The translations under genes and the position numbers were made by a program. Positions 26,855 through 59,858 of a stretch of 64,000 nucleotides of DNA are shown here, piece by piece. How positions within the stretch are numbered: position 1 is the first letter of the stretch; the number at the start of each line of letters is the position of its first letter. Below the pieces are notes generated by a model. It was not told the origin of the DNA. It worked only from the letters and a program-made list of their open reading frames with translations, and did not search any database. The stretch comes from Monocercomonoides exilis PA203 (lineage: Eukaryota; Protista; Preaxostyla). Location of the stretch: contig LSRY02000023.1 in the NCBI GenBank assembly GCA_001643675.2, positions 930,001 to 994,000 on the forward strand, written 5' to 3'.

Positions 26855-29800
26855 TCAACATTCAGAAAAATTTGCACTCACAGGTTTTTTCTCATCAGCT
26901 TTTGGACCTTTCCCCTTCACTTTCACTTTTTCCTTTTTATCTTCAAGTTTCTTTTCTTTTTTCTTTGGAATTTCTCCTATTTCCTTTGCTAGTGCTTTCT
27001 TTTCTAAGCTGGTCTCTGAATTCAATTCGATCAGTTGTACTTCCAAGTTTGATTCTCTGTTCAAGCAATTCATTTCTGGTGAGAAATTTATCTCTTTTTC
27101 AACACATTTTGCTTCCTTCTTGACAAAACGCATAAAATCCATTACTGATGAATATACACAAATATAATTTACTGGTCTCACCATTTTTTGAATCCCTCGT
27201 AAACTTTTTATCATGCTATCACATATTTTCCCCAAGCATTTAACTTCAAAGAAATACGAATTGATAAACATTTTCAAGCGCTTTTCAAAAATTCTGACAT
27301 TTTCCCACATCTTTCCCAATTTGATTGCGATAATCTTTTTCTCTTCTTCAAGTTCGATAACTTTCAGACCAACGGAACTTGTTGATTTTGAAGATCTCGT
27401 TCTAAACCTGCGCATTTTTCGTATCATTGATTTTTCCAACGATGAAGCATTTGCGTATCCTTCATCCTCCTCCTCCTCTTCGCTTTCCTCTTCTTCTATT
27501 GTTTCATCCTCATCTGAATCGTTGCTTGAGTGCTTTTTCTCAATAAATTCTTTCGTTTTGCCACTTTCAATTAAATTATTCTCGTCTTCCTTTGATCTTT
27601 CATCAATTTCATTGCATTTTTGTCCTCCATTTTCTTTCTCTAAAAGCTCTTTTAGATGTTCTGATAAAGCCATCCTGTATTTGGATACATCACAAATTTC
27701 TTCGATCTGATCCTTCAATTTCTTCACACACAAATAATAAAATACAGAAAATAAGCTCTTCCAACTCAGACAATCTTGTTTATTGATTGATTCCTGTTCA
27801 ATCACATGAACCGAAGAAGAATTTTCCATTTCAGAAGAAGGAAGCACAACTTCAGATGAATGCGCTATCAATCGAAGCAAGCAGCAAAAACTCTTCTGTA
27901 CAGGAGCAGAAAGAAAAGATGAGGAAGATACAAACGATGCAAAGAACAAATATGAAAAAAGTGCTCCAAAATCGGTCGGTAAATAAGAGTAACTGAACAG
28001 CTGAGATTGCTTCATAAACATAACGCCATCATGCCCTCTCTTTCTGTACAATGGCACAATCACAGAATTTTCATCAAGTGCAATTTGTTTCAAAACGCAA
28101 TCTGAAGCAAATGTGCTTTCTTTTTCATTCAGAGAATAATGCACATCATCAAGGACATTATATCGATTAAGAAACACCAATCTCTTTTTTTGTCTGCAAT
28201 AGAAATCACAAAGCAATACTGTTACAAATGGCATAATTCCTCTCAATTTACTATCAAAACGCAATGGTACAACAGTTGAGGATACGAACATTTTTAGGAA
28301 CGGAAATGCGCAATAAAGAGGATGGACATCTAGTTCAGATGCTTTTTCCTCGTTTTGTTTTAATGAGAGAGAAGAGCAAGAGCGCACAAAACTAGATGAA
28401 CTGGTTCTTGGTAGAGAATGCAACGAATTCAATTGTGAAGTTTCTGCCAAATCATCATTCGTTTTCGGATCTTTATCTGTGCTCACCTTTCTTTCCAGAA
28501 ATCTTTTCAAGAACAATTCATCAAGATGGCATCCTTCAGCAAAAGCACTGTCTTTCACTTCTGATTTCTCCCGATCCGAGTCCTGTTTTGGCTTCATCGA
28601 GATTGATAAATAGTGTGTTGCAACCGCAGCAAATAGAAGCATTCCTTTTGTCATTGAGTTCAAAGTTGATTCAACACACTCATTTGAATTCTTGGATTTC
28701 AGTAATGACTCGTCCTTCTCTCCAGCTGAACGTGCATTTCCCTCATTTCCCACTGAATCTTTCTTTTCAATAGTTTGCATCAAGTTTTGTTTGTTTGCTA
28801 AATCTGATGCATTTTGAGTAGGCTGACCAACAATACCACTTGAAGGTTTGGAAGAAGGCTCAGAAGACTGCAAAAGATGTGTTGAAGAAAGAGGATCATC
28901 AGAAGTGCTGGAAAATATCGTTGTTGAAGAATGATCAGTCAAGAACTGTTGCACAGCAGTCGCCTGCTTATTAGAAACTTTTATTGCCTTCTTTTCAGAT
29001 TCTTCTTCATTTTGAGGTTTTGTTTGAAGATCCATGCTTGTTTGAATAGGATCTTTGTGCTCATTAAACAATTCTAACTGTCTCAAAGCTTTTTCTTTCC
29101 TTTTCTCTTTTTTCTTTCTTTCTTTCTCTTCAATTTTAAACTTTTGATCTTGTATTATTTGCCCCAATTCTCCTTCTTTGCAGGAGTTGATTAAAGAACC
29201 TGTGTTGTAATTCCTTGCAACAAAAGATAAAACATCTATCTCTTTCTCAAAAACATCACTTGTAACAACACACGAACCGATATTTGAAATCTCCATGTTA
29301 TCTTTAAGATTTTCATGCTCTTCTTTTTTATTAATTTCCAAATAGCTTCTCACAACATTATCAAATAACGTTCTCAGTAGATTTGTGGAAGCGTCACAGA
29401 ACAAAGCTTGTCCAATCACCAATTCCGGTTCTTGTGGAGCGACTGATTGAGAGACAATTGCCTGGGAAGAGCTGTCTTCATCTGTCCATCTCTTGATCCT
29501 CTCGAAAAATTGAGAAGATGATGCTGACTCGGACGGGTCAATGCATGGAAGCTGAGAGATGCGCAGTGAGGGGCATCCATCGTAAAAGAAAGGTGGATTA
29601 AATTGAACATTTGATTGACTGGCTGAATTTGTTGTTTCAATCATCACAGGAATCACTGTCTTCTTCAAGGAAATGATTGGAGCTAGTTCTATCGACATCA
29701 ACTTCTTTTGTTCATTTGATTCGTTCTCAAACTTTCCTTTCGTTTCATTTCCTTCGAAATCGAAATATTTCTCTGAATTAAAATCTTCCTTTGTAAGCGC

Positions 29801-32800
29801 TAATGTTGATAGATCTCTTTCTTCATCCAAATAATGAGCGATATTTATATCCCAGTCTCTGACCATGCACTGCTTCATCACAAGAGATATTTTCGCCGTT
29901 TCTTCAAATAGATATTTTGGATGAAGATACACACAACGCGAGCAGCTTGTGTTCGGAATGAAGGTTCTTTTAAGATTGCACTTCATCAAGTCAGATATTA
30001 ATGATGTCACTTGACTTCTTGAGCTTGGCCGCAGATAGTCAAATAAATCTTTTCCAATCACTGCTTTTGTTCCAGCTTCGTTTGCATCAGGTATCTTTTG
30101 CTTATCACAGCTAGATGAGTTGAGCCTTTCTTTCTCCACAACCAACGCTTCATTCTCTAATCCAGCAAGAAGTGCATCCAACACAATTTCTGCTCCTCTG
30201 TTCCAAGCAGGAAGAATTGCAGAAATCAAAGAGAGAGCAGCTGTCCGGATAATTGTGGGATACATTGGCAGAGTTAAGTGCAGAAGTGCAGCAACGTCAA
30301 TTCCACCAGGAAATTGAAGAGAAACAGCTGAATCCGATTCACATTTCGAACTGTACAAATCTACCTGCTGTTTTGAACCTGCCAATCCTGAGCCAATTGT
30401 TGTGTTGGCTGCATTCTTTGAAGGATTTGCCAAATATGGAGGATATTTTGGAACAAGCTCTGATTCCATTAAGAGTGGAGAATCATCTTTATGTGGCCCT
30501 TGTTCAGTTTTTGACTCACTGCTCTCTTCCTCTTCTTCCTCATCCCAATCTTCTTCCTTTTCTTCTTCATTCCCTTCTTTCGGTTCTTTGGACTCTTCTT
30601 TTTGAATATTGTCCGATGACTCGTTATTTCTCTCTCTCTCTTTCATTCTCTTTTCTTTTTCTATTTCGTCTCCATTTAGCAGCCACTGCGCAACAAACTT
30701 GTCTCGATCTTTCCCCAAATGCTGTTCTCGTTCCACATTCGCAAGAACTGCAGCCATCAAAATAGGAATAAGAGAATAGATGTGCAACGGAGAAGATGGC
30801 ATCCAGCAAGAAGAAGCATATGTTGATATAAACTGATCCACAGAGTTTTTGCTGCTTTGTGTATTGATCTGCTTTCTCGTGTCTATCCCTTTCATCGCGA
30901 AAAAGCATTGCTTTTCTGAGCCATCAAGGAGCGATTGATTATTCTCAGATGAAGTTAGCAAACTGTGCGCAAGTGATTTCGTCAGTTGAGGAGGATCTGA
31001 AGATTGAATCGTGCTGAACAGGAGCCTCCGAACAGAATTGTGGAAAAGAAGGCAAAAACCATTTTCTGATCGATTCATTGCAGAGGAGCAAAGCGCACTT
31101 GCTGACGATTCACTTGAAGTTATATTAGTAGCATCATTACTTCTTTTGCTCGAACATTCATCTAACTGACTTGGAGAAAGATACAAATCCCTCACTCTTG
31201 TTGACAAGAGATGAGAAAGCCAGCGAAGAAGACGAGGCGGGAAGAGATTGAACAAGTCGTCTTCGCTCAGTGCAAGCCAATAGAAAGCTGTGTTTGGAAG
31301 AACTGTTTCCACATTAACATCCTTTTGCACTTTGATTTTTCCTTTCCCATCTCTGCCTGTTTCGGCTTCTTTCCTCTTCCGCATTTGATCTTCTGGTTCT
31401 TCTTTTGCGTTTTCTTCTTCTTTGTTCTCGATTTGATCTTTCTTATTCTGCTTCACAAGCGGAATTTCGAAATCAGCTGTCCATATTTTTCCCCTTTCCA
31501 AAGCACGCGGTTCAATCAATGCAGCAGAAAGCAAAGATATGATAATCGCAGGGTGGTACATGTTCAGCCTGCGAAGGCACAGCGAAAGAATTCCCCGCCG
31601 AACGAAATTCGACGTTTGTGCAGAAGCGTGGAAAAAGCGGAGCAAAGATGTTGTGGTGTGCGGATGGAAGAACAGAGAAGGCGCCGAATCATCTCCATTT
31701 TCAAACCATGCAGAGCTGTTGCAGAACACATCAGCTGCTCTTACTGAACCACCATTAATTTCATTTCCTTCCCTTCTGCTTCCGCACATTGCAGCAAACG
31801 ACGAAGGATAAGTCATTTTGGCAATTGAGATTATTTCTCTCGTATTCATTGTGTTAACCATCACAAAGCGGGTGAAGCAGCGATCAGCCATCCACAGCAC
31901 CCATCCGCTGTTGAATATGGTGCGAGAAGCAATTGAAGCAGAAGTCATGTTTGAGGAGTTGATATAAGATAAAATGACTGTCGTGCACAAATCAAGCACA
32001 TTCCGCAGAAGTGTGTCTGTGAAAAATGGTGAGAATAGCGAATTCATATTCATCGAAGCCAACTGACTCCTCGAAGCTGCAACTGGATTTAATCCAAAGC
32101 CAGGTGATTCTGCCGCAATAGAAGCTGTTGAGGAGGAGGAAGAAGCAGAAGGAGCCTGCAACGAAAACATCGACCGAGTTTTTCCCACAACAGTTATGTC
32201 ATGTGCTGCTGCATTCAATGCAATTATCAGGAACTGGTTTGGCAGCTGAATTGACTCTGCAAACTTGCCAAGTAGCGACTCATTCTCAAGCAGCGGATTT
32301 GCTATTTGTCCTGCTCCAAACCAAGGGAATGGCACAGGAGTGTTCAGAAACTGGAGAGAAAAGCTTCTTCCGCAAAGCGTTGTGAATAAGAAAGATGCCG
32401 GCCAAGGAGACACAACCAGGGGAGAAAACATGTGCTTGAAAGAAGGCTGGGCAAACAGCTGGGAAGCTAAGTCAGACACCATTTCAGAGGGTTTTTTGCT
32501 CAGGAATGCTATCATTGCATTTAGTTCGCTGTCGGAAAGACACGAAATAATTGGAGAGCCAACTTCTTCATCCAACAAGTCGTCTATTCGAATATCCTTT
32601 GATTTGATCTGCGATCGAGAAAGTGAACCCGATATTGCAGATTTCGTATCGTTCTTCTCATCTTCATCTCCATTTTTGCTTTCGGCCAATGGATCCTTAA
32701 CTTCTTCCTTCTGCTTTCTGTTTCTGTCTCTTCTGGCCTTCATTCGTTTCAGCCGCTCAATCACTCTATAAGAAGGGGCGCGCCTGCTCAGCACAAACAA

Positions 32801-35800: not shown

Positions 35801-38800
35801 TTGTGGTTGTTGTTGTGGTTGCGTTATTGTTTGTGCTTGTGATTGGCTTTCATCAGCTTCTTTGCTTTGCTCTGTTGGTATTTGCATTCTGCTTCTTTCT
35901 TTCACTTCCTTTTGCAGCTTCATTCGCTCCATCTTCATAATTCTTGATTTTTCTCTTTCTCTTTCTTTCTCATTCGTCTTCTCTTTCTCCTTTTCTCTTT
36001 CCTTTTCTCTTTCTCTTCTCTTCCCTCTTTCTCTCACCTTCCCATTCTCCCTTTTCTCCTTCTTCTCCTCCCTTTCCCTTTCCTTCTCCTTCTCCCTCTC
36101 CTTCCTCCTCATCCAGCTCACTGAATCATCCACCACCAGCAGCCTCAGCAGCCTCGATGCTGCCTCTCTTGTTCTCCAGTGCTTCGAATCAATCACAACA
36201 TGCACAATTTCTGCTCTGCATTGAGTAGCCAGCCGCAGACGGAGCGGAGGAGAAGAAGAAACAGCAGCAGCTGCTGCATAGAGATGGCTGATGACAGCAA
36301 GAGGGCTCTGTTTGTAGTCGGTGAGCGAGGCGAAGGAGCGGAAAACGAGGGAGAGAAGGGTTTGAGGGATGTCACAGAAGTTGGGGGAAATGGATGTGAA
36401 GGGAGAGAGTGAATTGGTAGAAGAAGAAGATGATGATGAAAGAGAAGAGAAGGTTGAAGAGGAAGAGGAAGAAGAAGAATATGGATAAAACAATGAAGAA
36501 GTTGCAGATGTCATCTTTAATCTATCATTCAGTGGAGAAAGCAGAGAATTGCTGCATTTCGACAGCAAAAACTGTCTTTTTGAGAGTCTCATTGGAATTC
36601 CCAGCCGAATTGCGTCTCTTTCGTGATGGGACGATTTCCGTGAGCTCATCGAAATGAGTTGCCAGAAGACAGAAAGATGAGGGAGAACAGCGTCAGACGG
36701 CTGGGACTGCTCCACATGGCGCAAAAGAGCAGAGAGGAAGGACTCCAAAATGGATGGAGGGTCGAATGGAGAGGAAGGAAGGGTGATGGTTGTGGTGGTT
36801 GAGGTTGTGATTGTGGATGTGGTTGTGGATGATGAAGTGGGTGAAGAGGAGGAGATGAAGGTTGGGAAAGAATAAGATGATGATGATGATGATGGAGAAG
36901 ATAGGAAAGATGAATGATGTGAATGCAGAGAAGAGCTGATGGGAACAGAAATGCTCGAAAACCCTCCATTAACAGAGGGGCCAGAGAGCGAATAAACAGC
37001 AGCCGCGAGGAGAGGCGGGGAGACACCAGAAAGCATCGCAGAATGGAGAAATTGAGTGTTGTGGAACAAGTCGGTGATGGTGGACAAGAGGGTGACGGCA
37101 GGATAAGCAGCAGAGAGGGCTGTGTAGAAGGATGTGTGCTGCAGAGTGGAGGAGGCGCCAGGGATGAAGAGAGGGTAATATGAGGAAGAAGAAGAAGAGG
37201 AGGAGGAGGAGGAATGAGAAGGAGAAGATAGTTTTGTTGTGGAGGATGAGAAGGAAACTGGTGAAGAACGCAATCTGGATGAGAAAGGACGATGACGAGA
37301 GGAAGAAGAAGAGGAAGAGGAGGAAGAATAAGAAGTAACTCGAAAGAGAAGAGGAAATAGAGTTAAGCTTGCCAGAGCATACTGCGAATCCAACAAAAAC
37401 GGTGCAGTTGGCCTCGGCAAGAGCGGTTTTTTCATTTCTTTTTCTCTCTTTTCGATGTTTTGAGGCAGAAAAGAGAGCTCAAATTCTTCTTCCACACCCA
37501 GTTTTGAAGGGTTTATTTCATCCAGTTCATTCATCAGCTCCTTTGAAGAAGGCTGCGGTAGAGAAAGCCACTCAAACAAGAAGTCTGTTTCCAAAGAAGA
37601 GAGATGAAAGAGATTTCGCAGAGAAGATAAGAGACTGAGTAAATGAGCGTCTCTTTTTGTGAGATTGTAAGGTGAGGAATGAGAAAAGGGCATTTTGAAT
37701 GAACTGACAGAGGAAAAGGAAGCAGAGGAAAGAGATTCTTTGAGAGAAGATGAGGATGTGGCTGAGGGAATTGGAGAAGGTTGATGAATAATTGTACTTT
37801 CTTTATCGTTTTCATTGTCTTTTTCTTTTTCTTTTTCTTTTTCTTTTTCTTTTTCGTCTTCTTCTTCCTCTACACCATCCCATTCATCTTCTTCTCCATT
37901 GCTATTATTGCTATTATTGGTAATGTTATTTTCATTGTCTGCATCTTTGCTTTTGCTTTCTTCAATTTCTTCATCCGTTTTGTTTGTAATTGTTACTCCT
38001 TCCATCACATGAATGCTTTCAACTGCTTCTTCTGCTTCTTCATCATATTTTTCTATGTCTTTCATATCAGTTTCTTCTTGTTCTTCCTCTTCATCTTCAT
38101 CTTCCTCCTCCTTCTCTTCTTCTTCCGTTTCCTCTTCATCACTAAATTCTTCATCTTCTGTTTCGCTTTCTTCGCTTGTTGATCTTCCACTTTCATATTG
38201 CAACATTTCATCTGCGTCCAATTCAACATTCTTCCTTTTCTTCTTCCCTTCTTCTCTTCTCTTTCTTCCTCTCCTTCCTCTCCTTCCTTCTTTCTCCACC
38301 CAAATCTCTTCTTCTCCTCTTTCTCCTCTTTCTTCTTCATCTTCCTCCACTTCCTCTCTAAATGCATGTGCCAATGTTCTTTCTTTGTATGTCAGGGCAA
38401 TCAGCTGCTTTCCAGCAAGGCCAATAACACTACATACACACCCAATCATCGCTTCCCACGCATCTCTAACAGCAACAGAGTCAGAAGCAGCAAGAGAAGA
38501 GGAGGAAAGGAAAGAGGAAAGAGAAATGGGGTTGGTGGATTTTGGAGGGGGAGAAGACGAAGAAGAAGACGAAGAAGAGAAAGAAGAATTCAAAACAGCA
38601 TCATTGACCAATTCTTTTGGAACCGCTTTTTCGATTTCTTCATCCAAAGGAGGCAGTTGTATTTCTGTTGACTTGCTTGTTGAATTAAACACATCTCCTG
38701 CTTTATCATCAAATGTTTTGTCGCTGTTATTCCCTCCTCTTTCTCCTCTTTCTCCTCTTCTGTCTTCTTCTCTTTTCTCTCCAAGTGTCTCTTTGAAGAT

Positions 38801-41800
38801 TGTTTTCTCTCTCATTTTGTTCCATTCATTCAGGTTTGTCTTCACATACCCTGCCCACTCGTCGTTGAAACTGCGCTGCTGCATCGAATCTGAATGGAAT
38901 GTCTGTGATTGTGATAGAGATTGTGATAAAGATTGAGATTGTGTTGGAATGGGATGGAAGAAGGAAGAAAAAGAAGGAGAAGAAGGAGAAAGAGAAGAAG
39001 AAGTGGAAGAGTATGTTTGAAGAGGAGATGGAGAAATAGAAGGAACAGAAGAAGAAGAAGAAGAAGCAGAAGAAGGCTGCGCTGAATTAACAGTCACCAC
39101 AGCAGATGAGGCAGAAGGAGAGCCTGTCACAAACTCCTCTATTCTCTTTGGAAAAGAGAGAGAAAGCAGCAAAAGCGACGAAAACGAGCCGATTGAGGCG
39201 AAATCACGCAGAAGCAGGAAAAGAGCAGTGAGTCTAACAAAATGAACCTGGTTGGCTGGGACAATGAAAGAAAGCAAAGAAAGCAGGAATGAATGCAGCA
39301 AAGCAAGTGAGGCAGACAAGAAAGGGGTGGGAAGAAGCGAAAGGGAAGCGAAATAAGGCTGAAGGGGCATGGGAGGGAGAGGAGGGAAGAGAGAGGAAAA
39401 ACCAATATCGTCGTATCTTCTTTTCGCTTTTCTTCTCTCTATCTCTGAGTTCAGCCCTTCAAACTCGTCGTTCTCCTGAAGCAAAGAGCTTATTGCATTC
39501 ATCTTCCTGCTGAACCCTCTTGCTCCTCCTTTTGCTTCGTTTCTTCTTCTGTTTCTCTCTTTCCTCAGCTTCCATCGCAAGTCAAGCTCTTCAGACACAC
39601 CAACAACAAGAAGAGTTTTCATTGCAGACAGCAAAACGCGATTGAAATACAACACAGCCATTTTATCGTCACATTCCAGATAGAAATAAGTGAGCCAGGG
39701 GAGTGGGAGTTTGGTGCTGGAGTGAGAAAAGGAAAGAGAAGAAGAAGAAGAAGAGGAGGAGGAAGAGGAAGAGGAAGTGGAAGGAGAAGAAGGAGATGTG
39801 TTAAACAAACCAGGAGAATTCAAACTGTTCAATCCAAAAGTCGATCCATAATGTTTCCCAAACGAAACATGCTGCTGAATCAACTGGAACACACACTCAT
39901 TCAAAAAGAGCGAGGCAGAATTGACTGAAGACGTCAAAAATGACTCTAATTCTCTCATCCACACAACAAACAGAGGATGATTATTGTTCTTACTGCTAAT
40001 ATTGTTATTGATACTATTGCTGCTATTGCTGCTATTGCTATTGTTAACGGCATTGTTGTTGATGTTACTGCCATTTCCATTCTGGATGTAGCTGTCGAAG
40101 AGAAAGTGCATCCAGAGGCGGAGGAGGGAGCCAGCGTTGACAGTGGTGGAGGAAGGAAGGAGAATGGTGTGGGGAGAGAAAGAGGACAAAGCAGGAATAG
40201 CTGAAAGAGTTGGGGTGAGGGTGATGCCAGAAACGAAGCTGCGAGAGAAGGAAGAAGAAGAAGAAGAAGAGAAAGAAGCAGAGGATGAGATGCTGGGAGA
40301 GTAATAAATAGGAGCAGGAGAAGAGGAGGAAGAAAGGGAAGAGGTGGAAGGAGAAGAAGGGATGGGGCCGATGTGTGGGGAGGAGGCACGAAGAAGAGGA
40401 GAAGAATAACCAGAAGAAGAAGAAGAGGAAGAGGAAGAAGAAGAAGAGGAAGAAGAAGAAGAAGGAACAACAATATTAGTGTGGCTGTTGATGAAGAGGG
40501 AGAAAGTGTGTTTGTTGGAAGAGAGGGGAGAAGAGGTGAAAGCTAAAGGAAAGACAGGAATTGGCATTTGGTTGAGAGAAATGGATGATACAGAGGAGGA
40601 GGAGGAAGAAGAAGAAGAAATCAATGATGATGATGCTTCAGATGTTGATGAAGTTTGTATTTCTTCTTTGGATGCAATGTTAGACAAAGTAGAAGATTTT
40701 GCTGTTTCTTTGTTCTTTTTTGATGTATTTTCTGTTTTTGTTTCATTCTCTTTTGTTTCTTGATGTCCAATTGATGACTGTTCCTTTGCTTGATTGTCTG
40801 TATTCACTTCTGAATTCAAATTTCTCTCATTCTCATTCTCTTTCTTTGTAACATCTTTGCTTTCTCCCTTTCCTTCCTTTACTTTCTCCTCTCCTTTTCC
40901 TTCTTCTTCTTCTTCTTCTTCTTCTTCTTCTTCTTCTTCTTCCTCGCTTCCTCCTTCTCTCCAGCACATCAGCGCCATTTTCATTGCGATTCCGAACGAG
41001 ACAAAGAAAGATTGGCTGTTCAGAAAGAGAGAATGAAGAAAAGCTTCGTTGCTTTTGTGGATGTTTGATAGAGTCGAAGGAAGAAGAAGAGATCTTCTTT
41101 GAGAAGAAGAAAGAGGATGATGAAGGAGAGAGAAGAAAGAGGATGAAGAAGAGTGAGAAGAAGGAGAAGGCGAAAGAGAAGGAGAAGAAGAAGGAGAAAG
41201 AGGAAGAGAAAGAGTCGAAGAAGAAAAGGAAGAAGACAACGAAGAAGTAGTTAGTGACATCGAAGACAAAGCAGAAGACGAAAGTGGATTTGAAGAAGAT
41301 GAGGAAGAAGATAGAGAGGAAGGAAACATTGACTGAAAACGAAGATTGGGGGAATTATTCGAAGTGAGTGAAAGAGCGGGAGAGGAAAGATCAGAAAGAT
41401 CATTAGAAGAAGCAAGAGCAGAAGAGGAAGAAGAGGAAGAGGAAGAAGAAGAAGAAGAAAGAGAAGAAGAGGTGCGAGGAAACTGATGTGCCAGTTTGCT
41501 TGGTGAATTGGAAGGAGACAGATTCAAAGAAAGCTTTCGGGCAGGCACAGGGACGAGAGGAGGACGTCTTTCTGTGTAATTGTCTTCATTGTTACCCCTT
41601 TCGTATTCTTCTCTTTCTCTTTCCTTCTCTTTCTCTCTTTCTCCACCTTCTCCTTCTCCTTCATCTTCTGAAGATGAAGCTGACACTGCCTTATCATATG
41701 CAATCTCATTGTATTCCATCTGATTGCTTTTCTCTTCATTTCTCGCTTGTTCTGGCTGCAAAGTCGCAAAAATCACTGGAACATTTGAATTTTCTGTGTT

Positions 41801-44800
41801 ATTGTTCATTTTCTCAGTCATTTCGTTTTCTTTGGAGTCATCAACAGGATAAATACGATCATAGAACAAGAGATATGCACACGTTGTCTTTGCCACTTTA
41901 AACCTTTCCTTTTCTCTCTTCTCTCTTCTTCTTTCCTTTCTCTCCTTTTCTCTCTCCTTCTCTCTTTCTCTTTCTTCTTCTCTCCGATTCCTCTCCTTCT
42001 CCTTCCCTTTCACTTTCACAGAGCCAAAACATTCCTCTTCCAACACACTCACATCCTCCACAACACTCACTTTCTCATCGTCAAACCGGATCCAACGAAA
42101 CGGCGCTTGCTTTTCTTTCACAAGAGAATAATAACGCCCTCCTTCTGCTTCTCCTTCGTGGCATATGATTCCACTCAGACGGAAGAGGAAGCTTTTTCGG
42201 GAGGCAGAAGAAGAAGAAGAAGAAGAAGAAGAAGAAGAAGAAGAAGAAGAGACAGGAATAGCTGTGGCGGAGAGCTTGTGTGGAGTTGAGGAAGCAGAAG
42301 AAATGAGAGAGAATGAAGGAGAAATAGAAAGAGAGGGAGAAGGAGATGGGGAAGGGGAAGGAGATGGAAGGGGAGAGAAAGAAGAAGAAGGATAAGGTGA
42401 AAGAGAAGGAGATGGAGAAGGCGGAAACGAAGGTGAAGAAGGCAAGTCACATTGCATAAGATAATCGCCTCTTCGTTTTGTACTCAGAAATTCATTGTTT
42501 TCTTCTTCATCTTCTTCTGAAAGCATTCCATTTGTTTCAGCAATCTTCTTCTCTTCTGAATAATCCCACATATCCAGCACTTCATCCTCCAGAGGAAACG
42601 CAAATGTGTCAAACAGCTTGTCCCTCGCCATCTTCTTCGGATCTTCCTGGAATCTCTTCAGGTGGAATATAAGTGTGTTGGGCAGTTTTCTGAACAAAGA
42701 ACAGGCAGTTGTTATGTTTTCTGCTTTATCTCTTCTTCCACTTCCATTTCCATTTCCACTTTCTCCTTCTCTTTCTCTTCCACATTGCTGGCATTCAACA
42801 GCATTCTCACCTTTCATCTCTTCTTCTGCGCTCATCGCTCTCAACGACTGAACCAATGATGTGTGATATTTCACTTCAATCGGAAGAATTGTGAATCTCT
42901 TGCTTTGTGTGGTTACGTGCCTCTTCTGCTGGCAATGGGAATAAGTTACCATTTCTCCGCCAAATAGACGCTTGATAAGGTTGTCTGGAAGAGAAAGAGG
43001 AGACAAGAAAGAAGTGGCTAATGACGATGAAGAAGTAGAACGATTCATCGAATTCAGATGAAAACGCGAATTTTTCGACTTTAATGACAGCTTCTTCCCG
43101 CTTTCTCTTTCTTTTTCTGCCTCCAAATACAACTTCTGCTTCTCTTTCTCTTTCTCAACTGCTTTTTCCTGCTTTGCAATGCAATATGCTTCAATATCAT
43201 CAAACAAAACATTCAGAAATTCATCAGCATCTATCTGTTTTGCAGGAGAAAGAAGGCTGCCATCAGAAGAATGGAGAATGGTGAACAAAAAGGAAGGATC
43301 TAAAAACGGGAAATGAGTCTCCTGAAGATGAGCAAACAGAGTTTGGAGAGAATGGAACACAGAAGATGTTTGAGAGGTTGAGATATTCTTGTTGCTATCC
43401 GATGTTAAAGAAGAAGAAGAAGAAGAAGATGATGATGATGATGATAATGAAGATGAAGGCAAAGAAAGAGCAGTTGTGGAAGAAGAAGACAAAGGAGAAG
43501 GTTTCTCAGTCTGACTTGAAGCAAAGATATCAGAGGAGGAAGAAGAAGAAGGCGAAGACGATATTAGAAGAGGAGAAGAAGAGCGAGTGAAGAGGCTTCG
43601 ATGCTTCTCCAATGGTGTTGTAGCTGATATAATCATTTCTCTGTCTTGTTTGTCTCTTTCTCTTCTCTGCACATCCTGGAGAGTGAATGCGAAAAGTGAG
43701 AATCTGAATGGAAGATGCATAAACAGCTGCTGAATAACTGCATTGAAATAGCATGTTGCTCCCAAGTTGACAAGGCCAGCGTAGCCAATGGCCCATCGAT
43801 TGTTGCACATTGGCAAAGAAGGAGAGCGTAAAGAAGAAGGTGAAAGCAAAGAAGAATTTGAAGAAGAATACGATGAAGATGAAGAAGATATGTTATTTTC
43901 CGTTTGTTGCTGATTATTGGAGTTAATTTCATTACCAAATGGATCTGAAGGAGGGATTCCAGTGATGACAGCAAGAAGAGAAGTAGCACTGAAATCAATG
44001 GCCGATTGAGTTGAGGTTGCAAAAATCGAATTTGTGCTGTTATTTTCTTGTGTGAAAGTGGATTTTATCATCTTTTGAAGTTCTTTTTGTGCTCTTTTGA
44101 AAGAGAAGAAATTATTTCCTGGGTCTGAATATGAGCCAATTTCATCTGCATCATCTTCTTCTTTGTTGATGTTGTTATTATCATAGCAATCTTCAATTCC
44201 ACAATGAAACACTTGCTCAAACATCTTGTTGATTTTCTCTTTTGCAATGAAAGCACGTTGAGAATCCGATAAAGAATCAGAGGAAGAGGAAGAAGATGAA
44301 TAGCAAGAAGATATATTGTATTCATTCTGACTCTTCCTTCTGAATTCTAGAATTCTCCCAAACGACTCCACCGATGTGTATCTTTGTGTGTTCTCCTTTT
44401 TCCTAACTTGCGCTTCTTTTTCACTCCAAACAGAATAGTTTTCGCTCAAAAGAGAAGAAAACGAATGACTTCTTGAAAGCGAAGAGGTCGGGGTGGAAGG
44501 AGCAAAAGGCAGCGATGTGGAAGCAGAGCGAGAAAGAGAAGGATAAGTGAAGGAATAATTCTTGTTGTATCTGTCTTTTCTGCTTCTCTGCTCTTCCCTT
44601 TTCTTCCTCGCCACAACATCTTCCTGCACTTTGCGCATCCACTTCAACGCTGAAGAAGGCAGAGTGATGCAAACTGTCGCCTCTCTCCTCTTCTTCATCT
44701 GCAAATCAGCACACAGAGAAATAAACAGCGACAGATTCTGCGAGCTTCCGCGGCACAGACAAAGAAGCAGAATAAACGCAGCATTTCGCGAAGATTCCAT

Positions 44801-47800
44801 TCGACATTGAGGAGAAGAGAAAGAGCGTAGAGATGAATCGAGGGGTGCTGGCTCTGAAAGAGGAGAGGTTTGAAATAGAGAACGCAATGAAAAAGAAGAA
44901 GTTGCTGTTGATGACGAAAAGGATGTTGAAGGAGCATTTGAGAGATAGCGAACTTGGAATGAAGACGGGGCAGAGGAGAAAGAGTTTGGCAGATCAAAAT
45001 TAGAAGATGAATGCGGAGGAAGTCCAATGGACGATCCAAACAAAGGAGAACCTTCCTTTCGTGGAGTGCTGTGAGCACTATCAACTTCATCAGACAAAGC
45101 GGATGACGATGAAGAAGAGGATGAAATCGATGAAAATCTCTTTCTCTCTTTTTCATCTGCGTTTTCTTCAGCATTCCAGCAGTTCTCGTCAGTGGATTTA
45201 TCTTGCGCTTCTTCTTCTTCTTCTGTTCCTTTATCCTTTTGATTGCCTTCTCCAAATACCTCCTTTCTTTTTGTTCTTCTTTTATTTTCAGTATGAATTG
45301 AAGTGCTGTCTTCATCAGCATCAATCTCTGAATCAATTTCTGTGCCTTCTCCTTCATCAGTCGTTCCTCTTCCACTTTCCATCTCGTCTCTTCCATCAAT
45401 CCCATCATTCCCTTCGTTCCCTTCATTCCCTTCGTTCTCCTCTTCACTCATCCATTCTCTGGTGCACACCTCTTCTTCTGGTGGAGACACACTCATCAGC
45501 ATGTGGAAGAAGACATGGGAGATCAGAAAATGAGGAGATGAAACGCCAAGTTCTGTTTTGAACTTTGACGAAAGCTGAGCAAAAGGTGAATGCGATTTGG
45601 AAGAAGAAGCGGTTGTTTTATTTGCTTTCTGTGGAAGATTTGAATTGTCTTGTTGATTCAACAAAGAATTCATTGTAATATTGCTTTTGTCTTCATTCTC
45701 TGTTTTGCTATCCAATCGTTTTGAGTGCAATCCAATTAAATACACAATAAGATGAACAAGACGAATGAGGATGACATCTTTTCCTTCTTTTCTGTTTCGT
45801 ATTGTGTGTCTTTGGAATGACTCGATTGTTGGGCGCTGCTTAATAATGCAGATGAGAATGTCAATAACATCCTCCAAATGAAGAAGAGTTATCTTTTCTT
45901 CCATCTGTTCTTTTTGAATGTTCTGTTTTTCATCATCAGTTTTTCCTTCTTCCTTTGTGATAGCATTGTGTTTCTCACAAGAAATCGTTAAGTCTCTTCT
46001 TTTAACTTCCCATTTTTGAGATGAAAGACTCAGAATATTACGAAAGACAAGGAAGAAAGCATCTGTTTGAGTTGAGGGCTTAATCATATCAAGGTTCTCC
46101 AAGCCAAATAGGAAGATTTGGGTAAGAGGATACAAAAGAGGAGGAAGTGATGAAGAAATTTCAGCTATTGAAGAAGATATTTGTGATTTTCTGTTTATTT
46201 GTTGTTCATCTGTTAAATCAGAATGAAGATGAATTTCTTCATTCATTTTTCCATTCATTTTTTCTTTTTCTTCCATTCGAGTTGCGAATTCACAGATAAC
46301 AGCACCCCATTCAGCTCGAATTCTGCTTGAAACAGGCAAAAATATGAGTGTCAGAATGAAAGGATCAATAAAAGTTGATCCAAACAAAGCAGCAAAGAGA
46401 TTTTCAGATGGATGCTGATTCAATGAAGATGTATCAGCCAATTCTATTTTTGTTCCATTTTCTGTTGAATTGTCCATTTCATTCTCTTTTTCAATTGCAT
46501 TTGTTTCCTCTTCATGATCTTCAATTGAATTCAAGCAGAATGACAAGGAATGCACAAGTGACATGCAAATTAGCACTGCCTCTTCTGCTTCTGGTGTTTG
46601 CACATCAATAGACTCACACATCTGCTGCTGCTTATATGTCTGTTGTGGCAGTTGTTGTTGTATTGGTTTATTTCTTCTTCTTTCTTCTTTGTTTGTTTGA
46701 GAAGCAATGGAAAATGAGGGTGAAGCATCCATAAAAAACGCAGAGGAAATCAAAAGCCCGTTGTTCATTGGAACAACACGTTGAGTCTCTTCTTCGACTT
46801 CTCTCTGTGTTATGATTTGTGTTCCTTCGAATTCGCTCCTGTCTTTTTCTCCTTCCATTTCTCTTTCTCCTTCTCTTTCTCCTTCTCTTTCTTCTCCTTC
46901 TTCTTCAAAAGTATTCCTTGGAGTCAAAATATCTTCTGCAGTTACAGCAGAAGCTGAAGATGCCTGTGTTGAAGACAAATAAGTTTGATACGAATCAGAA
47001 TGCATAGAAGTCATCTGGTTGATCATTCTTGTTATTTCTCCTTCGCTTCGAGGTGGCTGTGAATGCAAAATGTCAATTGGATCAAAAACAACCTTCGAAT
47101 CAGTCAAAACTGGTTTGCTATTGTCATTTTTTCTTTCATTCAATATCTTCTTCTGCCAATCATTCATCATCTTCAAGCAAAGGGAAATGGAAGTGTTGCC
47201 TTTGAATAGCACACCCAGCTCGATCGCTGCTTGGATTGTCTGAGAAACAGAAAAGAGAACACAAAGAGACAAAAGACGGAAGATGAAGGAGACAAGAAAA
47301 GATGAATTGAAAGATGATGATGTTGATGATGTTGAGGAGGAGGAGAAGGAAGAAGAAGAAGAAGATCCATAAGAAGAATGAAGCTGTTTGAGAAGAATAT
47401 TCAATAAGTCCATTCTGATTGATGTCTTCTTCTCTCTTTCATTTCCTAAAAATCCTTCTTTTTCTGCATTTTTTGAGTGAATTGTGGTATTATTGTAGTT
47501 CATACAGTCAAACCCATTCATTATTGATGCTCTTTTCTGAGAAGAAAATGAATGAGGAACGATAAGAATTGAAGAAATGGCACGAATCAATGAAAGAAAG
47601 AGAGAGGAACGAAGAGTTGGCGAAAGAGGAATAAACGGAGGAGCAAATATGGAAGACTCATATAATTGAGAAGAGAAAGAGGAGGTTAAAGAAGAAGAAG
47701 AGGAGGAGGAGGAAGAAGAAGAAGAAAATGAAGAAGGTACATTTGAATTAGAAGACACAGAAGAAGCAGAAGAGGTGCGAGAAAGAAGAGAGGCAGCGCT

Positions 47801-53800: not shown

Positions 53801-56800
53801 AAATAGCGCTTTTCCTGAAAAAGAGAAGGAAGAATAAGGTCTGAGATCAAGCATCGTCAGCAGCTTCTCCTTCTCTTCATTCACAAACCCTCTTCTCAGC
53901 ATCAAAAGAACCTGTGGAAAAGAAGAAAAATTAGAAATAAACGACAAAAGCAAAGGAAGAGGAATATATTTCTCTCTCTCTGCAGCAGATGGGAAAATTA
54001 ATATGAAGCAGATCAAATGGTGTACAAGTTGATCCAACAGGCCAGGGGCTAAATTGTGTGAGGAAAGGAACGAAAAGCAGTTTTGCTTGCGCCACTGCTG
54101 AAGTAACTGGCGATTTGATTGAGAAGAAGAAGAAGAAGAAGAAGAAGAAGAAGATTTTGTTTTCCTTTCTTTCTCTTTTCCTTTTTCTTCTTCTTCCTCT
54201 TCTTCCTCTTCCACTTTCTCAAACGGAGGGTCCACCACAAGCGACAAGACGAATTTAATTCCGTCTTCGATGATTGATTTTATCTTTGAATGAGCGTCCG
54301 AAGCAATCGCAGCCATCGCCAAGGGGTTTGTGAGTGCTTCAGAAAGGCTGCCGAGTTCGGGTTGCATTCGTGAATGGGCAGAGGAAGAGTTGGCAGTTGT
54401 CTGGGCAGAAAAGATGGGGGAAGAGAAAGAAGAAGAGAAAGAGGAAGAAGAGGAAGAGGAAGAAGAAGGTGTTTGTGTTTGTGTTTGTGTGATGTCTGGA
54501 TAATACATTCTTTTCATTGCTTCGCGAATGATGGCGCAGAGCAATGAAAAGCAGGAAAGATCTGAAAGGAGTGGAGTGAATGAGGAAGAAAACTGATGAA
54601 ATGGCTGTGAAAGAGAAAGAGAAGAAGAAGAAGAAGAAATATAAGGAGAAGAAGAAGGAGAGGAAGAAACAGAAGTTGAATGATGATCAGAAATTTCATC
54701 GTATTTGTGAATGAGACGAAAGGGAAAGGGGAATGGAGAAGAAGAAGAAGAGGAAGAAGAAGGGAAATTCAATGGAAACGAGAGATTTGAAGCATTTTTT
54801 GTTGATTTTTCTGAAATTTCAGCAATTTTCAGGAAATCCTGCAGTTGAATTGCAAGTTGTGTGGAACCAGAAAGACGAAAGCGTCGAACTCTCATCTTTT
54901 TTGAGGGAGAAGAAGAAGAAGAAGAAGAAGAGAAAGAGCGAAGAGGAGAGGAAGACAAAGATGTGAATGGAGAACGAGGAAGAGGTGATTGTGATTGTGA
55001 TTGTGATTGCGTGGTTGATAATGATGAAGTGACAGATGAAGGAGAGGAAGAAGAATATGATGATGATTGGAGTGAAAGAGAAGGAGGCGGAGGCGGAGGA
55101 GGAGGAGCAAGTGCTGGTGGGTGTGGTGATGGTGTGTGTGGTTGGGTGAATGAACGGTTGGGTGAATGAGATGGAGAAAGAGAAGAAGAAAAGGAAGAGG
55201 AAGAGGAAGAGGAGGAGGAAGAGGAAGATGATGATGATGAAGAGGGAGATGGAGGTAAATCTATAATTTGAGGAGGGCGAGTGGGCGAAGAAAGAGAGAA
55301 AGAGCGTTTGACCAATGGAGACGTACGAAGTGGTGAAGAGGAAGGTGATGATGAAGAGGAAGAGGAAGAAGAAGAAGAAGAAGAGGTTAATGAAAGAGAA
55401 TATCTTTGTTTAGAGTCTATTGCTCTGTTGTTTTTGATACTTCTGTCTTGTTGTGACGAAAGTTGCATCTGCATCTGCATTCTTCTTCCTTTTCCAACAC
55501 TTCTCTCGCTTCCACCTCTTTCTTCTCTTCCTCCTTCTCTTCCTCCTCTTCTCCTCCTCTGATTCATCCATTTCCCTTTCCCTTCTCTTTCTCTTTCTCT
55601 TTCTTTCTCTCTTTCTCTCTCTCCTTCTCCTTCTGGAAGCAAAACAAGAGAAGAATCAAAGAGCCATTCGAGACAGAAATCGAATATAATTCTCAAATCA
55701 TCCGCACTGCAGATGGGCAAAAGCTCAAAAAACAGCTTCATCATCACTTTCCCTTGCTCTTCTGTTTGTGAATTCTTGGCTCTGACTTTTCGTTTGGATG
55801 AAAGTTGTTTTAGTTCTTCTTCTGCTTCTTCTTTTGCTTCTCCTTCGTTTTCTTCGTTTTCTTCATCATTCCATGCTTCTTCTTTGAAACTTCCTTCACT
55901 AATACGTCTGATTGAATCAATATTTCCATTTTCACTCCCTTCTCTTTCTCTTCCTTCTCCTTCTCTCTCTCCTTCTTTCTCATCATTAATATTCTCATCC
56001 ACCAAAATACTATCAACTTCCACAAACTTTGCCTTCTTCTTCTCTTCAGGCGCTCCTCTTCGCCCTTTCGTCGCGTCCCACAGAAGTTTCAAGTATTGAC
56101 TGCCAATTCCTTTCACTTTCACCTTCACCTTCACCTTTTTCTTCTCCTTCTCCTTCTCCTTCTCCTTCACTTTTGATTTAGACTCAGAATTTAACTGAAC
56201 TTTTGATTGAGATTGAAATTGATTATTCGTTTTGTCTTTCTCTTCTGCCATTTTCTCGTTTTCTCTTCTTTTCTCACTCATTTTCTTCTCCTCCAGTTGC
56301 ATCGTCTGCATCTTGTTCACAGGCAATTTGTATGGCAATCGATAATTCCTCATTCTCGATGCTATTGTTGGTGCTAATTGTTCTTCTCCTCCACTTCCAT
56401 TGCTTTCTTTGGGAGAAGAAAATAAGGAGGAGGAGGAGGAGGAAGAAGAAGAAGAAGAAGAAGAAGAAGGAATATCATTCAATTTATCTTTCTTTTCTCT
56501 TTCGCTTGTTTCTTCTGTGCTTTCATTAACAGAATTTGTCCAGAAATTTCCTCTCACTCCTTTCATAAACTTCCCCACGCTTCCTCTTTTCAGAATCTTC
56601 ATCATCTTCTGCCTGTTTCTTCGTTGATATTCCCTATAGCTTTCTTCTTTTCCTTCTCCTTTTTTTTCTCCTTTTTTATCATCATTTTTATCTTCTTTAT
56701 TAAAATCACCTTCTTCTTCTTCTTCTTCTTCCTCCTCCTCCTCTTCTCCTTCTTCCTCCTCTCTCCATTCTTCTCTTTCCCCCAGCCAGCACATCCTCTT

Positions 56801-59378
56801 CACCAGCAGCGCCATCTTCTCCGCCACTTCTTTCGTCCATTTGTTCTCACCAAACGTGTTCTTCATAACAGAATGGCGAGACAAAAGCTGAAGAAACGCC
56901 TTTTGTGTAGTGGCAATAGACTTGTCTAATGCACTGACTGACTCAGAGGAATAAGAGGAGGAAAAGGAAGAAGAAGAAGAAGAAGAAGAAGAATTAAATG
57001 AATACACGTTATCCTTTGAGGAGATGGATGAGTGGACTGCAGAAGGCTTCAGAATTGAAGAAGAGGAAGTTTTGCTGCTTTCTGAAGATGGCTTAGTCAG
57101 CTGATGGGAATCGGGTGGAGTTGAAACAGAAGATAAACCTATTGAAGAAGAAGAGGAGGAAGAAGATGGAGAAGAAGGTGAATGAAAACTATCATCCACA
57201 TTACTAGCAGAAGAAGAAGAAGAAGAAGAAGACTTCTGGTGAAACCGGAGCGAAGGAAACGAGAATCTTGATTTTGGAGTGTTTTGTGGAGAGAACGAAG
57301 AAGAGGAATAAGAACGAGTCAATTTGTGTTTTTCGTACAGCTGGCTGTCAGGTGTGGAGGAGCGCTGGGGCTCGAGATAAGGAGAGGAAGTGCGGGTGGA
57401 GGAAGGGAGGGGTGTCATTGAGCGAAGAGGAGAAGAAGAAGAGGAGGAGGAGGAAGAAGAATTTAAAGAAGGAAATGCATGTGGCATAAAAGGAGGAAGA
57501 GAAGAAGTTGATTCAGAAGGGTGGAGCAGCATCGAGGGCGAGGCAGAATGAACCGGAACAGGGGAAAATGGCCTTCCACCTGAAATGTTTGGAGAAGACA
57601 AGCCAGATCCGCCCACAGCTCCTCCACCAACGCCAAATCCGCTGCCCCTCGCATACGGCGATGATACGCTTCCACTTCCACTTCCGATTCCTCCTCCAAT
57701 CCCTCCTATTCCAATTCCTCCTCCTACACCACTTCCTCCACCTCCTCCTCCACCACCTCCTCCTCCAGCCATCGCAGCCGCTGCCGAAGCTGCTGCTGCT
57801 GCTGCCAGTGCTTCTAGTTCAAGGTCGTTCTCCTCTTCCATCTTCGCGTCCACCCACATCCTCACGTCCCTCCCGCAGAATGTGCGTGCCAGCTGCTCTG
57901 CACCAGCAGCCTTCTTCTGTTTGGAGGCTGCTGTTAAGAGAGAAGAGCAGAGAATAAACAGAGTCGACTCGAGCGATTCACGAAGCACTTGAAGCTGGTC
58001 TGGTGGAGACAAGGCAAGGGAAAGATACTCGGCTGTCTGGAAGAGATGGAAGAGGTTTGGTATTTCGCTGGAGAACACGTCGTTCAAATTGAGAGGGAGA
58101 GGAACAGAGGCAGAGGAAGAAGAAGAAGAAGAAGAAGAAGAAGAAGAAGAAGAAGAAGAAGAAGAAGAAGAAGAAGAAGAAGAAGAAGAAGAAGAAGAGG
58201 AAGAGGAAGAAGAAGAAGAAGAAGAAAAGAGACCAGAAGAGGACGACAGATGAAGAGACATTGGTCTTCCAGCAGAGTTGCGAAAAGGCAACTTTGTGTT
58301 TATGCGATGTTTGTTCTTCATCTCAGCTTTTGCTGTTGCTGTTGCAGTTGTTGTGGCTGTGGCGCTGTTGAGGAAGCGGACGAGGCTGAACTGGAGCGGC
58401 GCAAGGGGAACAGACGGAACAGGCCCGTAGAAGCGCACGGCGAGTTCGAAGGGGGCAAGCAGGGCCTCCAGACGAGTGACAGATACACAGTGGGGCATTT
58501 GTGGTGTCAATGGCAATGTGAGGGAATCGTGTCGAATGGACGCATCGGTCGATGGTGGAAGGTCATTCGAAGTTTGGCGAAATGTCCCCATTTCTTTCTG
58601 AATAGCAGCCCATAGAACGTCATATCCATTCAATAAAAACAGGCTTCTTAATGCAGCTTCTTTGAATGATGATAACTCTCCAAATGCGTTACCAAAGGCC
58701 ATTTCATTCGGATTTTCTTGATTTCCGCGAGCGTTGCCATCCGTCTTTCCAAAAGTTTGAGTTCCAAAAGTAACTCTTGGATCAAAAATTGTTCCGATAG
58801 CAATGCATGCATCATCATTATTTCCATAAGAATTGATGTAATCAAGCAAAAAAATAATAATTGGATGAAGGCTTTCGCATATTGATTTCCACGTAAACTC
58901 TGAAATTGTTCTAAATTTGGTTATAAATTAAACACGTGATTAAAAAATTGTCAGCAGACTTTGCAAATGATCTATTTTGAATAATGCTGAAAAGCTTTGT
59001 AACCGACTGAAATAATTGTTTATTTGTTAAAAATGACAATTTATCGTGTTTTTCGCTTTTCATTATTGAACAAAAAGCTGATAAGGCCACTGAGCTTGTT
59101 ATTATCTCGGATTCTTTTTATATTTATCGAAAATAATTCCAGAAAAAACAAATAAATAATATTAAAACGAAAAATAATAAAACATGTGATAGTGTTCTAT
59201 AATAATATGTACCATTTTGTACCGAGCGATGAGGAGTAATTTCTCGAATTGATTCAAGAAATGCATTTTCATCATTAAGAAGCTGCTTATACTCTAGTTT
59301 TCTCGATAATAAAAATAATATAAAATAAATCTAATTCAAACTCTCAACGTGAAAATCGAAAATGGATTGTGTGGCCAT
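26855..59378 (-). CDS. Giant USP9X/USP24/USP34-like ubiquitin-specific protease (~10,800 aa), probably catalytically impaired
   Basis: 10,664-aa stop-free ORF. Cys box GLVNLGATCYFNAVIQQLF (Cys 43751-53), QIDADEFL, LFGGEMV, GENAVECQQC, KLPNTLIFHLKRF, His box LSGIICHEGEAEGGRYYSLV, WIRFDD, AYLLFY. Family-like flanking motifs WRILSFLPT, LYALRAIE, WFVENGGL and SSRNAAFILLLCL. Three short phase-compatible 5' exons extend it to ATG 59378 (MATQSIFDFHVEKYKQLL...). A GTGAGT donor at ~26880 may add a tiny terminal exon. Confidence 0.9.
52325..52432. repeat. 12-mer tandem repeat (GATGAGGATGAC)n encoding poly-Ser in the USP gene
   Basis: Directly visible. On the minus strand the codons cycle TCA-TCC-TCA-TCG. 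Confidence 0.85.
58116..58226. repeat. Long (GAA)n trinucleotide run encoding poly-Ser in the USP gene
   Basis: Roughly 27 perfect GAA units followed by imperfect units. Confidence 0.9.
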
Positions 59379-59858
59379 TCACTCAAAAAAAAATAAGTGA
59401 TCCAATCCTATAAATGAATATTTTTTCTTTTTGAGAAAAGATTAAAAAATACAAGTATTCTGAAGAGCATAATGTAAACAATATATTCTTTTTTTGAATA
59501 TATACAAAGTGAGAGGCAATATTCAACTTTCATTTTTTGATTTTTTTAAAAAAATGAAAAAATCGTACATTATTTTTTTCGTAAAAATATGCAAAAGAGA
59601 AATTCAAATTTTTTTTATTTTATTTTCATTTTTTTTTAAGGAATGAAATAATAACACTTTTAGTATTTTTGAATTGAATTATCAAAACTCAGAAATGATG
59701 ACAAACGTTTCTGACTTAAAACTCAAGTTGAAATTTTGAAAAAAATGGTTACATTAAATAGCAATGAAAGAATTATGATGTTGTGAAGATTATTTTTAAA
59801 TATTTTTTATCTTATTTTTTGTTCTTCCGCCCTTTATTAATATTAGTTGAAGATTTGA

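Follow-up and report, generated by a model that had tools for sequence, protein, structure and literature searches.

How can a reading frame of more than 10,000 codons stay open in an intron-bearing genome, and what does such a frame encode? The question is raised by a locus on the minus strand of a 64,000-nt stretch of the Monocercomonoides exilis PA203 genome (GenBank assembly GCA_001643675.2, contig LSRY02000023.1, positions 930,001 to 994,000). This stretch is called the window, and its own numbering is used unless otherwise indicated. A preliminary description of the window had reported one uninterrupted coding exon of about 32 kb for a giant ubiquitin-specific protease (USP). Our analysis makes it likely that the locus is a real M. 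exilis gene of at least two exons, encoding a USP-family protein of about 10,700 residues that is best regarded as a pseudo-deubiquitinase or scaffold. The literature searched held no account of pseudo-deubiquitinases, giant exons or giant USPs from M. exilis; the 2019 genome paper of this organism mentions ubiquitin just twice.

The exon and its downstream signal are as follows.

26855-58910 (G000:C18:956855-988910), minus strand: exon 2, the giant coding exon (32,056 nt with its TGA stop, 26855-26857); a stop-free frame whose upper edge is a putative intron acceptor
26744-26749, minus strand: likely polyadenylation signal AATAAA, 108 nt past the stop

The open reading frame (ORF) listing gave 10,664 codons for 26855-58849 (minus strand), counted from the first TTG. 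Another 26 open codons upstream of this TTG brought the total to 10,690, bounded by the stop at 58928-58930. A single stop-free coding stretch of more than 10,600 codons, as first described for 26855-58910, is therefore present. The remaining five frames across the same span contained 282-588 stops each, and their longest open runs were 190-307 codons. Given the local base composition, the probability of meeting no stop over the giant frame was ~1e-264. Pure purine or pyrimidine runs, in which no stop is possible in any frame, occupied 16-20% of the span. Homopurine and homopyrimidine DNA as the sole cause of the open frame was ruled out by this limited share and by the abundance of stops in the other frames.

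The GC content of the exon was 0.406, which matches the published gene GC of 41.3% in M. exilis and was counted in favour of the coding-exon reading. Two poly(A) motifs have been published for the organism, AAUAAA among them. The mean gene length is published as 2.7 kb, with 1.9 introns per gene, or 0.8 per kb of coding sequence; these introns average ~120 nt and have a GC content of 25-28%. These figures agree with the earlier statement that the genome is intron-rich. At 0.8 introns per kb, about 26 introns would be expected in 32 kb of coding sequence, and the Poisson probability of none was ~7e-12, with uniform intron density as the assumption.

The ORF protein contained 19.5% Ser, 9.6% Glu, 9.1% Leu and 7.3% Lys. 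An ad hoc criterion of entropy and hydrophobicity delimited 31 "complex islands" with 5,510 residues, or 52% of the protein. The protein had been pictured as a USP9X-type protein inflated 3-4-fold by low-complexity insertions. The data do not establish this, since low complexity made up about half of the length and no similarity to USP9X/24/34 could be detected in some 5,500 complex residues other than within the catalytic domain. On the mRNA strand of 26855-58849, 98 homopyrimidine tracts (2,659 nt) and 84 homopurine tracts (2,385 nt) were present in similar amounts. The homopyrimidine tracts read S/L/P/F and the homopurine tracts E/K/R/G, and the alternating Ser-rich and Glu/Lys-rich linkers of the protein arise from these two kinds of tract on one strand.

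Microsatellites were abundant in the giant exon, with 206 rows in the Tandem Repeats Finder output and 83 perfect simple sequence repeats (SSRs). The period was 3 or 6 in 80 of the 83 SSRs, and mononucleotide runs of at least 9 were absent from the exon versus 24 in the rest of the window. Slippage should thus leave the frame intact. The preliminary description had spoken of dozens of slippage-prone microsatellites within the frame; their number stood, whereas the threat to the frame did not. The repeats were also read selectively. All 37 perfect CTT-family repeats were read as Ser and none as Leu or Phe. In the 98 pyrimidine tracts (at least 15 nt), Ser and Pro made up 84% of the residues in the real frame, whereas Leu and Phe made up 76% and 82% in the two alternative frames (chi-square 892, p ~2e-194). 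The linkers are under protein-level constraint by this bias, as was to be expected if selection keeps the frame open, which had been proposed earlier.

One catalytic domain was recognised near the middle of the frame.

41861-43780, minus strand: catalytic domain of USP/ubiquitin carboxyl-terminal hydrolase (UCH) type at ORF residues 5024-5663 (PF00443 score 135.4 bits, cut-off 23.9, E 3.4e-39)
43391-43603, minus strand: insert 1 in the catalytic domain (ORF residues 5083-5153), with a predicted local distance difference test (pLDDT) score below 50 at model residues 93-163, in a gap between aligned blocks
42209-42472, minus strand: insert 3 in the catalytic domain (ORF residues 5460-5547), with a 15-Ser run at ORF residue 5534; pLDDT below 50 at model residues 470-557, in an alignment gap

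Positions 1-254 of the 254-position PF00443 profile were matched, spread over 640 residues of the ORF, and the genome search hit the same site. The best sequence matches of the domain in the PDB were USP9X and USP34. An AlphaFold2 (AF2) model from a 17-sequence alignment had 218 residues with pLDDT of at least 90 and 371 with at least 70. Foldseek placed USP9X at the top for this model (template modelling (TM) score by target 0.84-0.87, E 4e-24) and USP34 second (0.80-0.82), followed by USP35, USP7 and USP47. USP9X and USP34, named at the outset, were thus the nearest matches by sequence and by predicted fold. From the full-length profile match and the modelled USP fold, the protein is assigned to the USP family (peptidase C19) as a very divergent member. 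In a tree of 19 catalytic domains the gene stood on a long branch (1.89 versus a median of 0.64), without a firm placement.

Alignment to relatives, which had been suggested as a way to map the insertions, left only four alignable core blocks (residues 5014-5072, 5158-5222, 5288-5433 and 5551-5615) with disordered loops between them. The low-confidence loops of the AF2 model lay at model residues 93-163, 273-294 and 470-557. The distance from Cys box to His box was 545 residues; it was 352-451 in the paralogues, and relatives outside M. exilis had 276-349. Low-complexity Ser and Glu/Lys inserts do therefore interrupt the catalytic domain itself, as the preliminary description had it.

The giant gene was found to have relatives within the genome. 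A C-terminal island matched two other giant frames in the genome search. The two paralogues, and the two C-terminal blocks best conserved with them, are listed below.

G000:C69:1931494-1958106, plus strand: 8,871-codon paralogue, sharing 10 collinear blocks (residues 2708-9737)
G000:C69:750288-779336, minus strand: 9,683-codon paralogue, sharing 5 collinear blocks (residues 276-9756)
31142-32080, minus strand: best-conserved non-catalytic block (ORF residues 8924-9236), blastp E 1e-18 to each paralogue, with 59 invariant columns in the three-way alignment
29582-30331, minus strand: second conserved C-terminal block (ORF residues 9507-9756), found by blastp in both paralogues and also in a metagenome fragment

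Both paralogues resemble the gene in the window in their collinear blocks over most of the length, their giant frame, the position of a 5' intron and a Ser content of 15-19%. They differ in that identity within the blocks is 27-32%, the linkers are unalignable, and the gene in the window is the longest. This gene was 31.8% identical to the 8,871-codon gene (572 bits); the remaining two pairs scored 300 and 356 bits. At 27-32% amino-acid identity, the synonymous sites between the giant paralogues are saturated. The spacing between homologous blocks was broadly similar when two of the three genes were compared (for example 348/333, 1109/1044 and 401/464 residues). The USP domain of the 9,683-codon paralogue was degenerate and was not picked up by the genome scan with PF00443.

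This six-frame scan gave 121 matches, many of them ~830 nt long in frames of ~1,000 codons. The cellular USP genes in very long frames had 10,690 (this gene), 8,871, 6,719, 6,637, 5,970, 5,503, 5,189, 5,062, 4,931, 4,660, 4,638 and 4,383 codons. The giant exon is no lone oddity, given the two giant sister genes and the series of USP frames of 4,000-6,700 codons. One feature of the M. exilis genome is its giant USP genes with few introns. At least ten more USP genes lay in frames of 4,383-6,719 codons (e.g. C2:942835, C36:2171498 and C43:244164; others at C41:127764, C46:204129 and C33:960132), and the catalytic His was kept in all that were checked.

Outside the catalytic domain, the protein resembled little in the databases. 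Pfam searches of whole segments and of ten isolated complex islands (E up to 1) returned UCH alone. In these segments and islands the ubiquitin-like (UBL) domain PF00240 had no match at E up to 1, which divergence could mask, and PF25010 and PF12030 had no Pfam match either. A profile of the conserved C-terminal block gave nothing significant against PDB sequences, and full-length USP9X was not matched. The AF2 model of this block, built from a three-sequence alignment, had a mean pLDDT of 37 and was unusable; secondary-structure prediction was all-helical. The ESM Atlas yielded generic alpha-solenoid look-alikes, none of which reached a score of 0.9, and we take them as a lead only.

When proteins of 5,500-17,500 aa were searched by shared words, nothing was found; the same kind of search among proteins of 1,375-4,377 aa gave four weak catalytic-domain matches, one of them a paralogue fragment of M. 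exilis. ORF residues 8753-9910 were compared exhaustively with 1.84 billion representative proteins by HMMER, and this returned one 237-aa metagenome fragment (P0005; ENA sample ERZ27257344, on a 792-nt contig). It was 43% identical over 86 residues and contained a conserved block of ~60 residues with E/K/R repeats on either side. P0005 presumably comes from another oxymonad. It was the sole relative of the C-terminal body found outside the M. exilis genome.

The 5' end of the gene was delimited by comparison with the paralogues. The first in-frame ATG of the giant frame is codon 50; the sequence upstream of this ATG is nevertheless conserved. A motif common to both giant paralogues, E-x-W-x-S-I-C-(D/E)-S-L ... 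C-x-A-(I/F)-G, starts about 13 codons past the in-frame stop. Further upstream, 59114-58902 is homologous in a different frame to the 8,871-codon paralogue at its residues 27-97 (tblastn, E 1e-7 in a small search). These results point to a small upstream exon and a short intron.

58911-58959, minus strand: putative phase-2 intron, 49 nt, GTCTGC...TTTAG, GC 0.27 (paralogue comparison)
58960-59063, minus strand: putative exon 1, coding portion of 104 nt counted from the in-frame ATG that comes first (59063-59061; tblastn and frame check)

The homologous junction was GTTTGC...ATTAG (56 nt) in the 9,683-codon paralogue and GTTTGG...CATAG (60 nt) in the 8,871-codon paralogue, and the segment was AT-rich in all three genes. 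The 49-nt and 56-nt segments break the frame, so they must be removed if the frame is to continue. Exon 1 (from at least 59063 to 58960) joined to exon 2 (58910-26855) gave 32,160 nt and 10,719 codons with zero internal stops in the frame check. From these alignments, the 5' intron position appears to be common to all three giant genes. The upper limit of 58910 in the preliminary description coincides with the proposed acceptor of the 49-nt intron. The actual start codon could lie upstream of 59063. A different 5' exon, with an ATG at 59276 and a donor at 59223, was dropped; its phase suits the main-exon acceptor only, and it bypasses the paralogue-backed exon at 58960-59114. In the 8,871-codon paralogue, the 60-nt segment (G000:C69:1931718-1931777) has a length divisible by three and is stop-free, and it is probably an intron concealed in the open frame. 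The stretch 59527-59565 belongs to the AT-rich DNA that separates the giant gene from its divergent upstream neighbour.

Next to be considered are the catalytic residues.

43751-43753, minus strand: catalytic Cys codon TGC (ORF residue 5033), kept; Cys box NLGATCYFN aligned to relatives
42134-42136, minus strand: Arg codon CGT (ORF residue 5572) in the catalytic-His position; His box GGRYYS against G-H-Y/F
42080-42082, minus strand: third triad position, Asp codon GAC (ORF residue 5590); RFDDEK aligned to F-N-D of relatives

The catalytic His was present in all 18 other sequences compared, and the Arg was unique among the 19 aligned. The 9,683-codon paralogue has Arg at the same position and has lost the Cys too, whereas the 8,871-codon paralogue keeps both Cys and His. 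A base-calling error is unlikely because the same Arg stands at this second locus. The shared Arg may have arisen twice, or a closer kinship of the two genes may be masked by faster evolution of the third. Cys and the third triad residue are thus in place and the catalytic His is missing, while the USP fold is kept in the model and the open frame and its bias are constrained. On this residue pattern, the protein is probably not an active deubiquitinase; a non-catalytic or crippled pseudo-deubiquitinase is predicted. A complex prediction of the catalytic region with M. exilis ubiquitin scored 0.77 versus 0.87 for the control, which is evidence neither for nor against binding.

The exon was scanned for introns that might be hidden in the frame. 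Windows of 90 nt with GC of at most 0.25 made up 0.5% of those inside the exon versus 24.8% in the rest of the window. A strict donor/acceptor scan of the exon gave 17 pairs. In a relaxed scan (any GT donor, a YAG acceptor, a length divisible by three, GC of at most 0.30 and below that of the flanks), one locus was found within the exon versus 48 matches in the 26.8-kb flank.

46165-46305, minus strand: the one segment left that might be a hidden in-frame intron (129 or 141 nt, GC 0.28-0.29); splice signals weak, and the segment reads as K/E/N-rich coding sequence

In general the AT-rich stretches of the exon lacked good splice signals and read as coding sequence rich in K/E/N. We also sampled 1,055 31-mers from 37500-47499, a region that takes in the catalytic domain with its inserts, and 97-98% of them were present in four RNA-labelled runs of one study. 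The runs may be the ribosomal RNA-depleted directional Illumina metatranscriptomes of a polyxenic M. exilis culture (PMC12308965), which their labels fit. The presence of these 31-mers independently confirms the sequence, and the gene is probably transcribed.

Several observations speak against a gene that is translated over its full length into an inactive giant. No known family was matched outside the catalytic domain by the Pfam, profile and HMMER searches; the donor GTCTGC is not textbook, and the proposed intron, at 49 nt, falls well below the mean of ~120 nt; total RNA can carry pre-mRNA or residual DNA, and a word share of 98% leaves room for a small spliced intron; the 8,871-codon sister indicates that a stop-free intron divisible by three is able to hide in a giant frame; and the loss of activity is deduced from one residue alone. 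The structural doubts come together in the explanation that several stop-free in-frame introns are hidden in the frame and that the mature protein is far shorter than 10,700 residues. The intron that is apparently read through in the sister gene, the one remaining candidate at 46165-46305 and the ~2% of sampled 31-mers absent from the RNA runs would fit it. Intron-like AT-rich windows are ~50 times rarer in the exon than in the flanks, though, and a single GT...YAG candidate compares with 48 in the flank. Moreover, the tracts show a frame choice at the protein level (37/37 as Ser, p ~2e-194), and nearly all of the ~26 ordinary introns expected would carry stops or break the frame. We therefore regard this explanation as quite unlikely. 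That several separate genes or transcripts share one frame by chance gains something from the presence of only one recognisable domain across 10,690 codons, and is nevertheless very unlikely: the conserved blocks follow one another in an identical order, almost from end to end of the protein, in three paralogues that each have a single open frame, and the exon contains neither internal stops nor AT-rich DNA of intergenic type. An assembly artefact or a decaying non-functional frame is hardly credible. The published assembly (82,301,135 bp in 101 contigs) is nanopore-based and its authors report a few uncorrected frameshifts, which leaves some opening for error; assembly errors, however, destroy frames and do not make them. 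The same explanation would have to accommodate the 31-mers of the central 10 kb in independent Illumina RNA-labelled runs, a stop-free probability of ~1e-264, and blocks conserved in two paralogues and the metagenome fragment.

The last doubt concerns activity. Some USPs formerly deemed inactive later proved active, and the protein could be an active deubiquitinase that tolerates the Arg or uses another base in its place; alternatively, His could be encoded in the mRNA or the true genome. The intact Cys and Asp and the well-predicted core fold are in keeping with this, and CGT is one transition away from CAT. Against it stand the His kept in 18/18 compared sequences and the second paralogue with Arg and without Cys, a sign that this subfamily can tolerate the loss of catalysis. 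The branch is also among the longest of the tree (1.89 versus a median of 0.64), as expected once catalytic constraint is gone. An active enzyme is thus unlikely in our judgement, and the pseudo-deubiquitinase or scaffold reading is preferred.

Compared with known systems, the protein is most like USP9X and USP34 (5wch, 7yxx, 7w3r and 7w3u), which are its best matches in sequence and fold (TM by target 0.80-0.87) and are likewise large proteins with the catalytic domain in mid-protein. The Pfam set of the nearest database relatives in other eukaryotes is of USP9X/24/34 type (PF00240, PF25010 and PF12030). The M. exilis protein, in contrast, has no detectable UBL, PF12030 or PF25010, has Arg for His, carries three large disordered inserts in its catalytic domain, and is ~4 times longer than USP9X (chain of 2,579 residues). 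USP39/Sad1 and PAN2/USP52 are USP-fold pseudo-deubiquitinases of ordinary size whose partners are the spliceosome and PAN3. They resemble the M. exilis protein in keeping the USP fold, in having lost at least one catalytic residue and in a presumed binding or scaffold role; it differs from them in being giant, in retaining the Cys and in having lost His alone.

The proteomes of Plasmodium and Dictyostelium are rich in low complexity. There, too, domains are split or spaced by long low-complexity inserts, with repeats of trinucleotide type in frame, whereas the M. exilis gene pairs such inflation with the loss of a catalytic residue. Human TTN and MUC16 have coding exons of ~17-22 kb. They are similar as single exons of tens of kb for repetitive or modular giant proteins. 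They consist of folded-repeat arrays or mucin tandem repeats, whereas the M. exilis exon combines unique conserved islands with simple-sequence linkers and sits in a genome averaging 0.8 introns per kb of coding sequence.

In the model that we consider likely, the short 5' exon is spliced over the 49-nt intron to the 32,056-nt exon, which would permit full-length translation into ~10,700 residues. About half of this protein would be folded-looking and probably helical, in collinear blocks conserved with the two sister genes; the other half would be Ser-rich and Glu/Lys-rich disordered linker encoded by the homopyrimidine and homopurine tracts. The tracts may lengthen and shorten by slippage in three-base steps with the frame intact, and selection on the translated product would hold the pyrimidine tracts in the Ser frame and purge stops. 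The size of the exon was probably reached by in-frame repeat expansion in an already long, intron-poor gene. Because the block spacing is similar in all three genes, most of the size would predate the paralogue duplication. The protein would cleave ubiquitin poorly or not at all, and may act as a large scaffold in which helical islands are spaced by disordered linkers.

A bolder proposal is that the three giant genes encode oxymonad-specific megadalton pseudo-deubiquitinases in which length itself is functional, as a ruler, a tether or a condensate-forming reader of ubiquitin. The lengths of the linkers and not their sequences would then be maintained, with the conserved helical islands at set distances. 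We offer this as a conjecture and consider it unlikely.

If the scaffold model is true, the exon would be among the longest coding exons described and the product among the largest USP-family proteins. It would also be a natural example of exons reaching tens of kb through frame-neutral trinucleotide slippage, with selection acting on the reading frame in which the repeats are translated, that is, Ser and never Leu or Phe in the perfect CTT-family repeats. A small family of giant USP-like genes would have lost catalytic residues at least once, and probably twice, while keeping an open frame of ~30 kb. A frame kept despite such loss points to a non-enzymatic deubiquitinase-scaffold role, in an organism studied for mitochondrial loss. 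For annotation, the sister gene suggests that stop-free mini-introns divisible by three can hide in giant frames.

Two further features were noted in the window. At 12680-14467 (minus strand), the ORFs 14018-14467 and 12680-14014 lie in the same frame with a single stop codon between them and have no Pfam match; an in-frame intron containing the stop, readthrough or a broken gene are possible. A gene resembling cyclins occupies 2298-3794 on the plus strand, with Pfam matches to Cyclin and Cyclin_N in its ORF 2298-3014; it is apparently split over several short ORFs, as expected of an intron-bearing neighbour.

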